64,000 bases of DNA from Eutreptiella sp. 'Long Island Sound 2002' (taxonomy: Eukaryota; Protista; Euglenida), in contig OZ038378.1 of NCBI GenBank assembly GCA_964036045.1, positions 171,616,001 through 171,680,000 of the forward strand, given 5' to 3'. The notes under the pieces are model-generated. The model saw nothing but the letters and a program-made list of their open reading frames with translations. It ran no database searches and was not told the origin of the DNA. The position numbers and the translations under genes are program-made. Each line of letters opens with the position of its first letter. The first letter of the stretch is position 1. Positions 20,296 through 32,545 of the stretch are shown here, in pieces.

Positions 20296-20577
20296 TTAGC
20301 ACTTCGCACTGGAAATGGCCTTCACAATGTCTGCAAACTCAGGCTTCAGGGAGGCCCCACCCACAAGGAACCCGTCAATGTCCGGCATGGCAGACAGATC
20401 AGGGGCGTTCTTGGCGTTGGCCGAGCCGCCGTATTGGATGCGGATGGCGTCCGCAACCGCCGGCGACGCCTTCTGGGCGATCAGCTTTCGGATGCCTGCG
20501 TGCGTGGCCTGGGCGTCCTGCGGCGTGGCGGTGAGACCAGTGCCGATGGCCCACACCGGCTCATACGCAATGATCAC
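20296..20577 (-). CDS. TPI: Triosephosphate isomerase, last exon
   Basis: CAG acceptor at 20580-20578. Reads [14 protein letters not shown] (catalytic Glu loop)...YGGS...[16 protein letters not shown]...AKC, stop TAA at 20298-20296. Confidence 0.97.
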
Positions 20578-20703
20578 CTGGGAATGAGGGATTGCGCAAG
20601 AGACAAAGACAGAAACAAGGACAGAGACAGCATGGGCAAGATGGGCCCACCGTGGGTAACTGGACTTGCCTGCAGGGGGGGGAGGGGGGATCCCGTTACA
20701 TTA

Positions 20704-20870
20704 CCCCCCCTTCCCCTTGCGCAAGCACGCTGGTCAGGAAAACAACGGTCAGACGGGTCCTGTACTTAGGCAAGGCAGTGCCCATAAGAGGAAACCCAAA
20801 AGAGCAGTTGGAAAAACGACGGTCAGACGGGCCCCATGCTTAGACAAGGCAGTGCTTGCGCAAGGGGGGG
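20704..20870. mobile_element. 167-bp MITE with poly-C/poly-G ends
   Basis: TIR CCCCTTGCGCAAGCAC / GTGCTTGCGCAAGGGG, preceded by TA, with an internal ~43-bp direct repeat. Related ends at about 5495-5580, 43500-43590 and 44010-44070. Confidence 0.75.
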
Positions 20871-21840
20871 TTTTGGCAAGAAGCCATGGTCTTGTGTTCT
20901 CGTCTGCAGCTGGCACGCCCACTGGCAGATCGCCATTCGCTGCCCTTCCCTTCCCTTTCCTTCAGTGAAGGTCCACCAAGCCGCTGTTTTGGTCCGCCGT
21001 TTCTGTTTCTCCATGGTGGCGGGTTGCGTCGACCAAAACATTAAGGATCCATACGGCAATACCCTTCACCTCCACGAGGTCACGTTCATGCTCATGGCGG
21101 AGTGCTTCCATCGCGTGTGTGGGTGAGCTGCGTAAACTCAGCACGACTGTCACCACTTCCCCCCATGTGTCACACGTTCACGGCTCAACAGGAGCGCCAA
21201 CGGTGGTGCCCGGTCCAAGCTGCGCGACCATCCTCAACACCATCGGCACATGCTCAACTGTTCACTGCATGCCATACCCCCGGCGATGCAGTGCTACGGA
21301 GTCGTGGCGGGTACTCGCACTCTCGCTGTACCAGATCTTCTTCACTGGGAGCTCCACGTGAGTCGCGGTGTCGTTAGCATGCTCTCGGCACGCTCGGCGC
21401 ATTCCACGCCCCAACAGCCCCCGTGGGGGGGCGATCCACGTCATGCGTGGTATGAGGGGGTTTTGGCAAGAAGCCATGGTCTTGTGTTCTCGTCTGCAGC
21501 TGGCGGCGCCCACTGGCAGATCGCCATTCGCTGCCCTTCCCTTCCCTTTCCTTCAGTGAAGGTCCACCAAGCCGCTGTTTTGGTCCGCCGTTTCTGTTTC
21601 TCCATGGTGGCGGGTTGCGTCGACCAAAACATTAAGGATCCATACGGCAATACCCTTCACCTCCACGAGGTCACGTTCATGCTCATGGCGGAGTGCTTCC
21701 ATCGCGTGTGTGGGTGAGCTGCGTAAACTCAGCACGACTGTCACCACTTCCCCCCATGTGTCACACGTTCACGGCTCAACAGGAGCGCCAACGGTGGTGC
21801 CCGGTCCAAGCTGCGCGACCATCCTCAACACCATCGGCAC
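20871..21840. repeat. Near-identical ~380-bp direct repeat (20871-21248 and 21461-21840)
   Basis: Both copies give the same translated segments in the ORF track (20962-21156 vs 21553-21747). Confidence 0.92.
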
Positions 21841-22763
21841 CGGGGGGGGGACTTTGGAAAATCGGCACCCCCAGCTCCCCTCTGTCCAGCAATCCCCAAA
21901 GTTCTCCAAAAATACGGTCCAATCACCAAGTGAATGTTGGACACGCTGTTCACTGCACGCGTTAACGTGTTGGTGACCTCCCTGAGTACAAGACACCCGG
22001 CCCATACAAAGCACAAGGGCAGGTGCAACTGCACAGCCCTGGGAGTGTTCTCACAATCTCGGCTATCCTCGAAGAAGTGAGCACAGTCCATCTTGTTGCT
22101 TGGAAGGGTAGACTGAGACCCTGAGGGGCCTTTAGCTGCCTCTTGTATTGGCTCATGCATGGCAATACGGCCGACCCTGGTTGTTGATGAGGATCATTCT
22201 TACTAGGGGCACTGTATGGTGTGGTTGGCTGCAGTAATAAGTCTAAAAGTAAGAATGTTTTAGATGTACAGGAAGAGGTCCAATGGCTGGGTAAGCATGT
22301 GGACCCTGGGGATTTGTCGATTGCCAATGGAGTGGCCCTCCTGACAAAGGTCCTGGCTTGCTTTGTTCACATTTATGACCACCATTCCAGTCTAAAACCT
22401 CCTGCGTGTTTTGGGCTGGGTGGGGTTGGCGACACTATCCCCTACCCTTTTGCAGGTTACTGCCATTTACCAGGAGGGATTCGTATTTGGATTGCATTGC
22501 AATGCATTCCGATTGCACCTGGCTCCATGGCAGTGATGGCTACACCTAAGTTTAGACCCATAGTCTTAGATTGAAAGTGTGTGAGGTGGATTGGATTTGT
22601 GTTGTGCCTGCACAGTCCCATGACTCCAAGTCAGTGCTCAAATTCAGGGTGGGTGTGTGTGATCGAGTTCGGGGAGGTCGAGCCTGTGTTTGTCGGAGGT
22701 GGATGAATTCCCCCATAGTTTCAGGATTGGTGCGCATCAGTAAAATGTTGGCGCATTCCGGGG

Positions 22764-30306: not shown

Positions 30307-31489
30307 CTATGGGCATTCGTACAAGTTTGTGAAATGGGGTGAATGGGAAGCATACACAAGGCAGTCGTCCCTCACATCACGCAGGATAGGCAGTCAGGGT
30401 TAAGGGGATTTCGTGTTTGTCCTCTTGTGGGTAGACCAGCTCCTCCTTCACACCCCAGGACACATATAAAACACAAAATGACTGTAACGCAGCCCCAGTG
30501 ATTGGGCCTGATTTGAGCTCACTCATACGGGGGGGATCAGGCCCACGGCTAAGACTCCAACTGTGCCTGCTCCACGGCCTTCATCATCCTCTGATGTACT
30601 TTGGACAATGTTCGAGTGATTCCTTCTGAATGTGCCACCCTGTGTACCCTGGCCTGCAGGCACCAGTATGGTCTCATGCTCTCCTGTCCTGCTCATGTCC
30701 TCTCCTTCCAGGACCCTGTGCATCATCCCAGCTAGGTGGGCACACTGGTCAGTGGTCAAACTCCAGAATGGGCATGCTATCAACACTTGCCGGTGTGCTT
30801 GGGATCAATTAGCACATCAAATGAAGATCCACCAACCGAGCATATGGGCATGCTATCAGTGTAGTGTGTCACAGACTAGGGGAAGTGGGGATTATGATTG
30901 TAAGGCGAACATCTTTCAAACCACCAACTCCAAAGCGGAGAGGAGTGAATTCACTCATCATTGGGTGTTACCACATGATTGACCATAATCTAACCTGAAA
31001 AGGCAGAGACTAGTAACATTGTTGCCAAGCAATTGCGACGAACCCCTCAACCTTGAGTAAACACCCTTTCTATGCCCCTTTTCACACAAATTCCAATGAA
31101 ATGCATGCCATCAATAGAATTAACTCACTTTACGCTCTAAGAAACACAGTGACTTTGAGTAAAGGGGTAAAACTACAGTCAACTAGTTGCTGACATACAA
31201 ATTTTGCACTGCATGCACAGCATTCCAGGCACGGGGGGCTAGACAAGGTACCGAAAATTATCAAGGCCACTTTCCTTCGGGCCCACATGGGGGGCTGGGG
31301 GATCAGAATCAAAGGGGAACAACACCCAGTATGATGCGTGAGCCATTGGTTGCGTGTGTAGTTTGTGTGGGTTATTGGCTTGTGGCATGGGGTGGGTGTT
31401 TGGAATATGTTTCATAGTGGCATCTCCACCTTGGGCACTCTAGCTTGTGTGCACAAGTTGGGTGGTGATGGAATGCACAGTGCTTCTGC

Positions 31490-31800
31490 TGGATTCCACA
31501 CCAACGGGGTTTGGGGGGTTGGGTTTCCTGCAGATTCCAGGAACGTGGCGGAATGCATACATACATCCAAAGAAGGACAAACCAATAATTACGGTGGACT
31601 ACCAGTACCGATCCGTCCCAACTCAAAGCTGGTGGTAGAAGCTGTCATGGGATGGCTCAGCAGATGGCATGGGTCATCAGGTGTAGTGGCTTATGCCAGC
31701 TTCTGGGAAAGCTGCCTGGGGAGTGGGTATGATGGTTCTTGATCCCCTCCCACAATGGTATCAAAGATAATGTACATGCCGATCTTCTAGCCTATGCAGT
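31490..31800 (+). mobile_element. Decayed LINE-type RNase H fragment inside TPI intron 1
   Basis: Fragments EGQTNNYGG, NSKLVVEAVMGWLSRW and IPSHNGIKDNVHADLLA resemble the RNase HI motifs TNNxAEL, TDS and PSHxGxxGNxxAD. Frameshifted. Confidence 0.65.
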
Positions 31801-32378
31801 ATGCTGCAAGCTCCCACTGCTGTTTGGAAAGATTTTCATAAATCCCATCTCAAAGGAGGCCAACTGGCGCAGCTGGGGGCAGGGGAGGCCGTACGCAGGT
31901 CACAAAGCGCTCCACACATGCACGTCCTGGTATGCATATGCAGCAATGTTCGGCAGTTCTTTCATCATTGGCCTGGGCCACACCTTTGCTATGCTACAAG
32001 CACGTTCAGAGGGGGCAGGGGAGGGGGGGGAGCTGCCAAGTGGCAGCGAATGGGCATAACTTGCAAATTGAGAATTTCAACACCTCATACAACCTGATGG
32101 AACTGCCACGCCAAACAGCATCCGGAAGTACAAAGTAAAATGAAGAAGCCAGAAACTGAAATGACAGGCACTGCAAACGCAGGGGTGCCATGGAACATGA
32201 CATGGAGCAGCACGTGATCAGGCAACTAAACAGGCAAGGACTAGCTTCTGACATGGGGGCAGCACTGGCAGTTGTTGTGGTCAGGCGGTCCATAACTGTG
32301 GTGGGTTGGGTTGGGTTGGGCTGGGTTGGTTGGGGTGGATGGGTGGGTTGAGTTGAAATGGCATCTGCACGCATGCAC

Positions 32379-32523
32379 CTTTCTTGGACTCCAAAGCTTC
32401 TCGGAGAAATGCCACGGGCTGAGATGGCTTGGCATTGACAAGTTGTTGAATGAGGTCATTGACAAGCTCAGGAATGCCGTGCTTGCGGAGGTAATCAATA
32501 TCATCAGCATTTTGTGCGGCCAT
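32379..32523 (-). CDS. RIIa/Dpy-30-like dimerization-docking domain exon; putative first coding exon of the TPI gene
   Basis: Reads MAAQNADDIDYLRKHGIPELVNDLIQQLVNAKPSQPVAFLREALESKK-G, matching the D/D pattern YLxxHxIxxLxxxLxxxLxxxKPxxPxxFL. 145 nt, GT donor at 32378, phase 1. Confidence 0.85.
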
Positions 32524-32545
32524 CGTGAAACAAAGAGAGGAGACC

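Follow-up and report, generated by a model that had tools for sequence, protein, structure and literature searches.

Does a glycolytic enzyme of a euglenid carry its own docking tag, and if so, where might it dock? The question is raised by a 64,000-nt stretch of the Eutreptiella sp. 'Long Island Sound 2002' genome (assembly GCA_964036045.1, contig OZ038378.1, positions 171,616,001 to 171,680,000), which we call the window and to which all coordinates refer unless another locus is named. An initial annotation of this stretch proposed that a short exon encoding a dimerisation/docking (D/D) domain is spliced to the exons of a triosephosphate isomerase (TPI). Transcript contigs contain this join: a minus-strand gene with four coding exons (912 nt, 303 aa) yields an mRNA in which the docking exon precedes the TPI exons. 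We think it reasonably likely that this is a dedicated D/D-TPI gene for an anchored isoform of the enzyme, which would dock on a flagellar scaffold; the localisation and the binding are what we infer from the relatives of its docking domain.

Transcript and gene structure

The join was assessed with transcript contigs (not raw reads) from four runs belonging to four studies, aligned to positions 29300-33000; the chosen runs contain about the exonic share of this stretch. Every run (4/4) has one contig that covers 32546-32378, resumes at 30305-30042, continues with 29614-29392 and then enters the first part of exon 4, without a single mismatch. Four contigs from the Joint Genome Institute (JGI; L006-L009, 1707-1713 nt) encode exactly the 303-aa product, P0158, and match the window at 100 % identity over 32546-32378, 30308-30042, 29619-29392 and 20579-19528. 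Spliced RNA linking the docking exon to the TPI exon is thus present in both sets of contigs, and the contigs of the four runs offer the docking exon no alternative partner downstream.

Genome and transcripts agree on the details of the join. The coding part of exon 1 (32379-32523, starting with the ATG at 32523) is 145 nt long, i.e., 48 codons plus one nucleotide, and ends in phase 1 with AAA G|GT at 32379. Intron 1 (30307-32378; 2072 nt, GT-AG) is removed in 4/4 runs, leaving a joint between 32378 and 30305, as the initial annotation had predicted from the exon's limits and phase. No AG occurs in the 62 nt that precede the acceptor AG at 30308-30307, as expected for a real 3' splice site. 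Exon 2 also begins in phase 1, and both sequence and transcripts bear out the claim that the frame is kept across the join, which reads ...LESKK-G-RRPVVGGNWK (junction-spanning sequence ...LESKKGRRPVVGG...).

The rest of the model follows from profile matches and transcripts. Exon 2 (30044-30306, 263 nt) covers positions 1-85 of the TIM profile, with the catalytic Asn and Lys in GGNWK, and is followed by intron 2 (29617-30043; 427 nt, GT-AG, phase 0; joint 29614 to 30042 in 4/4 runs). Exon 3 (29395-29616, 222 nt) covers profile positions 88-149, with His and Glu in GHSERR. The repeat-rich intron 3 (20578-29394; 8817 nt, GT-AG, phase 0) is defined by a contig whose loose end at 29392 runs into exon-4 sequence and by L006-L009. 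The coding part of exon 4 (20296-20577; 282 nt including the TAA at 20298-20296) covers positions 158-244, with the catalytic Glu and the phosphate loops YGGS and GGASL. It is followed by an unspliced 3' untranslated region (UTR) of at least 768 nt (19528-20295), since positions 662-1713 of L006 equal window positions 20579-19528 at 100 %. The claimed architecture of four exons, 912 nt and 303 aa, with GT-AG borders on all introns, therefore stands at 100 % identity in L006-L009.

The 5' end is marked by trans-splicing. All transcript contigs start with (T)ATTTTTTTTCG, which abuts GGTCTCC (from window position 32545 on). This tail equals the 3' end of Eut-SL, the spliced leader of Eutreptiella, a 28-nt sequence given as ACACUUUCUGAGUGUCUAUUUUUUUUCG in PMC3621762. 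The leader is joined at the outron's terminal AG (32546-32547; genome ...ttccctacAG|gg), ahead of a 5' UTR of 22 nt (32524-32545 by alignment of L006-L009 to the window). The mRNA therefore consists of the spliced leader, the 22-nt UTR, the 912-nt coding sequence and at least 768 nt of 3' UTR, and because the 22-nt UTR contains no ATG, the ATG at 32523 is the first AUG.

Could the join be an artefact of assembly or mapping, created by a chimeric contig? The evidence is from contigs, and one public member of the P0158 cluster, P0254, has a plain-TPI tail and may itself be chimeric. However, datasets produced independently (2013, 2015 and 2022) agree on the join, which falls exactly at canonical GT..AG sites, keeps the frame and comes with a spliced leader at the 5' end, so we regard this explanation as so improbable that it deserves almost no weight. 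The introns give no sign of another gene to which the docking exon might belong: the six long open reading frames (ORFs) of intron 3 have no Pfam match, and 19000-34000 has no Rfam match.

P0254 is UniRef100_A0A7S4FW45 ("Triosephosphate isomerase, Eutreptiella gymnastica"), which belongs to the 90 % cluster of P0158. It differs from the window protein only in the last ~20 residues, where it has the end of the plain TPI; the entry probably stems from a chimeric transcript assembly.

The docking domain and its enolase relatives

What kind of domain do the 48 residues encode? Alone, exon 1 scores 22.9 bits against the Pfam RIIa profile (PF02197), for which the cut-off is 22.4. Searching sequences of solved structures is more decisive about class: the best phmmer match in the PDB is the D/D domain of protein kinase A (PKA) RI-alpha (2ezw, E 2.9e-6, 17/36 residues identical), with five more RI-alpha or RI-beta sequences at E <= 1e-3. 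The Dpy-30 profile (PF05186) has no match to exon 1 at E <= 1.

The predicted fold agrees. An AlphaFold2 (AF2) model of the domain, built with eight homologues, has a pLDDT of 88.5 and places helices at residues 2-14, 17-31 and 36-47. Its top Foldseek matches are complexes of the RI-alpha D/D domain with an A-kinase anchoring protein (AKAP), namely 5hvz_B and 3im4_B (probability 1.0, TM score 0.72, root-mean-square deviation (rmsd) 0.6 Å). RI-beta comes next, and nearly all others listed are either D/D domains of the RII or DPY-30 type or chains from structures of axonemes and radial spokes, with the DPY-30 structures placed under the RI and RII domains (rmsd 1.9 Å).

Two features define the R1D2 class (PMC8339350): an aromatic residue next to a hydrophobic one in the N-terminal helix, and a PxxP motif in the loop that links helices I and II. 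Exon 1 has both hallmarks: Y11-L12 in the N-terminal helix and P33-S-Q-P36 in the loop. Since profile, sequence and modelled fold agree and the hallmarks are present, the 48-aa exon is classified as a type-I (R1D2) PKA-like D/D domain. The expectation that the segment would score as a D/D domain was thus borne out by sequence and predicted fold, and by the RIIa profile marginally and for the exon alone; of the original "RIIa/Dpy-30" label, an RI-like D/D domain survives and the Dpy-30 part does not.

The resemblance to the PKA regulatory subunits is confined to this module. The D/D domains of RI-alpha and RI-beta, known in complex with AKAP helices (2EZW, 3IM4, 5HVZ, 4F9K), are the best match in sequence and fold and share the N-terminal helix and the PxxP loop, whereas D/D-TPI has no cAMP-binding or inhibitor region. 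It also has Val where RI-alpha has the sole Cys of the aligned stretch.

Possibly related modules occur elsewhere. The fourth-ranked Foldseek match is a glucose-6-phosphate dehydrogenase chain of Leishmania donovani, which superposes on the D/D hairpin with an rmsd of 0.7 Å over 32 columns; chains of the same enzyme at ranks 16 and 21 do so at 2.2-2.4 Å over 41-42 columns, in each case with ~20 % identity. These structural matches hint at a D/D-like element on another euglenozoan enzyme of sugar metabolism. Among proteins found by sequence, P0006 (174 aa) combines a SnoaL_4 (NTF2-like) domain with a D/D domain closely related to that of the TPI (63 % identity), and P0003, P0004 and P0016 (1000-1300 aa) have four to seven D/D-like stretches each.

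The closest relatives of the module are on enolases. When the 48 residues were searched exhaustively against 1.84 billion representative proteins, there were 18 matches, of which the best two (73 % and 68 % identity) are enolase N-termini. D/D-enolases also exist alongside D/D-TPI: locus L011 of the ENA assembly ERZ25074135 equals the window at 100 % over 6333 nt, so loci in that assembly count as belonging to the same genome, and at least three of them (L001, L010 and L012) encode D/D-enolases whose modules are 75-76 % identical to that of the TPI. In L001 (6106-6331), an 81-nt intron lies exactly at the module boundary, in phase 1 as in the TPI gene. L010 (8001-8519) and L012 (6001-7086) have none there, and L012 includes a single ORF of 361 aa that extends from D/D across Enolase_N into Enolase_C. 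A fourth example, L002, comes from another sequencing run.

One could suppose that the docking exon is kept in the mRNA yet binds nothing, i.e., that it is a neutral leader left by an exon-shuffling accident. Its occurrence in a single species cluster and its marginal Pfam RIIa score would suit this idea, but the comparison with the enolases does not. Synonymous sites are saturated between the TPI and enolase modules (proportion of synonymous differences, pS, 0.74-0.98), while the proportion of non-synonymous differences, pN, is only 0.13-0.20 (44 codons only), which implies that the TPI module has long been conserved as a protein. The TPI and enolase modules are identical at all positions of the hydrophobic core and groove, and the hydrophobic positions are conserved with RI-alpha as well. 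With a confident AF2 model and about 50 % identity to the RI-alpha D/D domain over 36 residues also speaking against it, we consider a neutral leader quite improbable. Judging from these substitution patterns and those of the TPI half (below), both halves have been kept under purifying selection since they were fused.

The TPI half and the origin of the fusion

The TPI half has every sign of a working enzyme's sequence. The Pfam TIM profile (PF00121) matches the full protein with 238 bits over profile positions 1-244, and the initial annotation was right that the catalytic K, H and E motifs are intact: GGNWK is at residue 55, GHSERR at 140 and the catalytic-Glu motif at 215, with YGGS at 259 and GGASL at 283. 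In the full-length model, the TPI barrel is predicted as such; the last D/D helix ends at residue 47 and strand beta-1 begins at 53, so the predicted linker is only ~5 residues long (K48-P52).

Plain TPI genes, i.e., those without the docking exon, are found in the same genome, in tandem arrays on two contigs (L004 and L005), and no D/D exon lies between the copies. The copies (L004:6052-8775 and 11841 onward; L005:1142 and 6013 onward) run head to tail with a period of ~4.9-5.8 kb. Their product (MPATRKPVVGGNWK...) is the E. gymnastica MMETSP protein P0143, which with P0144 of the same species is the named plain TPI nearest to P0158. The TPI domains of D/D-TPI and of the plain protein share 88 % amino acid identity, with a synonymous divergence (dS) of 1.22, a non-synonymous divergence (dN) of 0.080 and a dN/dS of 0.066. 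By these values, the TPI half is under strong purifying selection and the duplication is old.

How did the fusion arise? In L004, the plain gene is interrupted at two sites, which agree in position and phase with introns 2 and 3 of the tagged gene. Its start, ATG CCC GCA ACC CGC AAG (MPATRKPVV), aligns codon for codon with ATG CCC ATA G|GA CGC AGG in the tagged gene, where the ATG (30314-30316) is in frame, lies 9 nt upstream of the acceptor and is now inside intron 1; the initial annotation had not listed it. Because the intron positions are shared and the old start codon sits just within the new intron, we conclude that the tagged gene is a duplicate of a plain TPI gene. On this alignment, a new acceptor arose in codons 3-4 and ATG 30316 is a relic start (MPIGRRPVV...) of the ancestral plain TPI.

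The relic start raises the possibility that the gene's main product is a free TPI of 258 aa, with the D/D form as a minor isoform made from an alternative first exon. The ATG at 30316 is in frame and would give a natural MPIGRRPVVGGNWK start, and contigs lose rare variants. However, no contig from the four runs covers 30306-30415, use of the AG at 30372-30371, the sole one upstream, would leave an upstream ATG at 30353 that is out of frame, and trans-splicing at 30307 would delete the ATG itself. The separate genes of the tandem arrays already supply free TPI, so there is no need for a free isoform from the tagged gene. We therefore reject the free form as the main product and consider this explanation very improbable.

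Probable docking site, distribution and precedents

Where would the D/D domain hold the enzyme? The best clue is the enolase relatives. The euglenid D/D-enolase aligns with the central-apparatus enolase of Chlamydomonas (7n6g_6G/7sqc) from residue 5, through the N-terminal extension of the latter, whereas other solved enolases align with it only from the catalytic core onward. Directly, the TPI exon has a weak match to the Chlamydomonas extension (E 0.012). Taken together with the enolase N-termini as nearest sequences and the three loci in the same genome, this makes the anchor module of D/D-TPI homologous to that of a ciliary enolase.

In Chlamydomonas, the C1b projection has enolase among its subunits, alongside CPC1, FAP42 and HSP70, and a preprint on Trypanosoma brucei places enolase in C1b as a dimer. 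Enolase is listed among the R1D2 proteins of non-metazoans, and PKA-R-like D/D proteins have been lost in lineages without flagella (PMC8339350). The case for a flagellar tether is strengthened because the module is also found on enolases of the same genome and aligns with the extension of a central-apparatus enolase.

The anchored isoform could work as follows. In the TPI homodimer, the D/D domains of both subunits would pair into the usual four-helix bundle, whose hydrophobic groove would clamp an amphipathic helix of an AKAP-like flagellar scaffold protein. The likeliest dock would be the site of the D/D-enolase, i.e., the C1b region of the central apparatus, with the radial spokes and the paraflagellar rod as alternatives. 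Interconversion of triose phosphates would then take place beside the lower-glycolysis reactions that yield ATP for the dyneins. TPI itself yields no ATP.

A different reading accepts the fusion and has the D/D domain act outside the flagellum, on a cytosolic, plastid-surface or membrane scaffold, or by cross-linking TPI dimers to one another or to D/D-enolase in a soluble glycolytic assembly that has no AKAP-like anchor. D/D domains can form homotetramers and heterodimers (PMC8339350), and the 5-residue linker may favour pairing between dimers over pairing within one. TPIs of the clade also bear many other N-terminal address tags: among 111 full-length sequences, 69 are plain and others have plastid-type, acylation-like (MGAGAS...) or signal-peptide-like N-termini, so a new N-terminal address in this family need not point to the flagellum. 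Set against this, the great majority of non-kinase PKA-R-like D/D proteins belong to cilia and disappear when flagella are lost (PMC8339350), and the nearest module is on enolase, a central-apparatus subunit in Chlamydomonas. We judge a non-flagellar role unlikely, though well worth keeping in view.

Several points weigh against an anchored, flagellar D/D-TPI. Its localisation, helix binding and oligomer state, like those of the euglenid D/D-enolases, are deduced by analogy; the partner is a putative AKAP-like scaffold, and pairing of the D/D domains within a dimer across so short a linker is assumed. The RIIa score falls to 18.7 bits in the full-length protein, below the cut-off, and public annotation consequently gives the TIM domain only. 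Contigs are blind to rare isoforms and to expression levels, so a rare free isoform may have escaped them. The solved T. brucei enolase sequences have no D/D extension, and if the central-apparatus enolase of that species is the solved protein, then a D/D domain is not the sole route to the site. Lastly, only the P0158 cluster carries the domain among the 111 TPIs, and its position in their tree is within a polytomy; the fusion therefore looks confined to one or a few species, which sits oddly with a dS above 1.

Searches for further examples returned the same picture. The tree of the 111 TPI domains, with a bootstrap that had not converged, gives P0158 no sister group (e.g., the MGAGAS-type TPIs). 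In the ESM Atlas, the N-terminal 60 residues have no match and the whole protein finds plain TPI clusters only. A word-index search with the D/D part of P0158 gave seven candidates and two matches, with no other D/D-TPI among them, and a scan of metagenome contigs with the D/D exon alignment gave one weak locus (L003, 58 % over 24 residues).

Some of the other TPIs have extensions of their own. P0220, P0243 and P0236, from marine metatranscriptomes, start with MGAGAS... followed by a charged helical stretch; from its sequence, this start could be an acylation-like tag and thus another possible TPI anchor. P0221 has a C-terminal extension of 100 aa.

How new is the arrangement? The initial annotation called it undescribed, and this holds for TPI as the tagged enzyme: we found no description of a D/D-TPI in the literature on RIIa domains with TPI or enolase, or on flagellar glycolysis (including that of Euglena). 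It does not hold for the principle, since D/D-tagged metabolic enzymes (enolase, AK5 and AK8) have already been described. The published list of the D/D superfamily has these three, EFCAB10 and others, but not TPI, and one supplement mentions neither TPI nor euglenids (PMC8339350). TPI would thus be a new cargo. Its sequence is already public, labelled only "triosephosphate isomerase" (UniRef A0A7S4FW45).

The closest precedent is the D/D-enolase of ciliated non-metazoans (PMC8339350), with the Chlamydomonas C1b enolase (7N6G/7SQC) as its structural example. As in D/D-TPI, an RI-like D/D domain stands at the N-terminus, ~4-5 residues before a homodimeric glycolytic enzyme. The differences are that the cargo here is TPI, an enzyme of upper glycolysis outside the published list, and that its flagellar site is a deduction. 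AK5 and AK8 (both R1D2) are likewise enzymes of nucleotide and energy metabolism with a module of the D/D clan, although different enzymes, and AK8 is tied to cilia by a hydrocephalus phenotype (PMC8339350, Table 1).

Other systems tether or place related enzymes by different means. In sperm, the fibrous-sheath GAPDHS and a TPI isoform have N-terminal extensions that tether glycolytic enzymes along the flagellum, but these extensions are not known to be D/D domains, and both lineage and scaffold differ. AK7 and NME5 are energy-metabolism enzymes with Dpy-30 domains, the subclass which is excluded for D/D-TPI. T. brucei has PGK-like and GAPDH-like proteins in the axoneme or paraflagellar rod; they are predicted to be catalytically dead and have been argued to be remnants of flagellar glycolysis (PMC4106842, in which we found no mention of RII-type domains). 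These are euglenozoan glycolysis-related proteins as well, whereas D/D-TPI keeps all its catalytic motifs and is under purifying selection.

The interest of an anchored D/D-TPI lies in a problem that is only partly understood, namely how ATP is provided in flagella, at a distance from mitochondria, and what keeps soluble glycolytic enzymes in place there. To our knowledge, enolase has been the sole glycolytic enzyme with a PKA-type docking domain. A second tagged enzyme, which acts in upper glycolysis and belongs to the same cell, suggests that docking domains serve metabolic enzymes as an address label that is both general and evolvable. Tagged and untagged TPI paralogues in one genome make a clean test system. 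Standard annotation misses the domain (the public entry reads only as a TPI), so similarly tagged enzymes are probably under-counted in protist data.

The idea can be taken further. A single R1D2 docking exon, spread by exon shuffling, might tag an entire series of enzymes for sugar fermentation (those shown being TPI and enolase), giving a scaffolded and largely self-contained flagellar line for glycolysis plus NAD regeneration. We regard this extension as possible but doubtful. If true, a docking-tagged line of flagellar enzymes would be the natural counterpart of the synthetic metabolons that have been engineered with docking domains.

The introns and flanks of the gene contain repeats of several kinds. 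The dispersed element of ~75 nt in intron 1 (31887-31961), which shares that intron with a (CCCAA)-like simple repeat, is matched at 90-95 % by many unrelated RNA contigs, as is 32706-32774; their depth adds up to more than 1000, and there are loose ends at either side. The element is single-copy in the window and has no Rfam match, and it looks like a short dispersed element common in transcripts. Intron 3 has repeats at 20916-21806, 26140-26570 and 27415-27657, comprising a perfect tandem duplication of 591 bp, (CATTA)x37 adjoining (GTAAG)x44 as an imperfect inverted pair, and three 81-nt repeats. Just upstream of the gene's outron, a 69-nt direct repeat (33173-33241 and 33408-33476) has 99 % identity between copies 235 nt apart.

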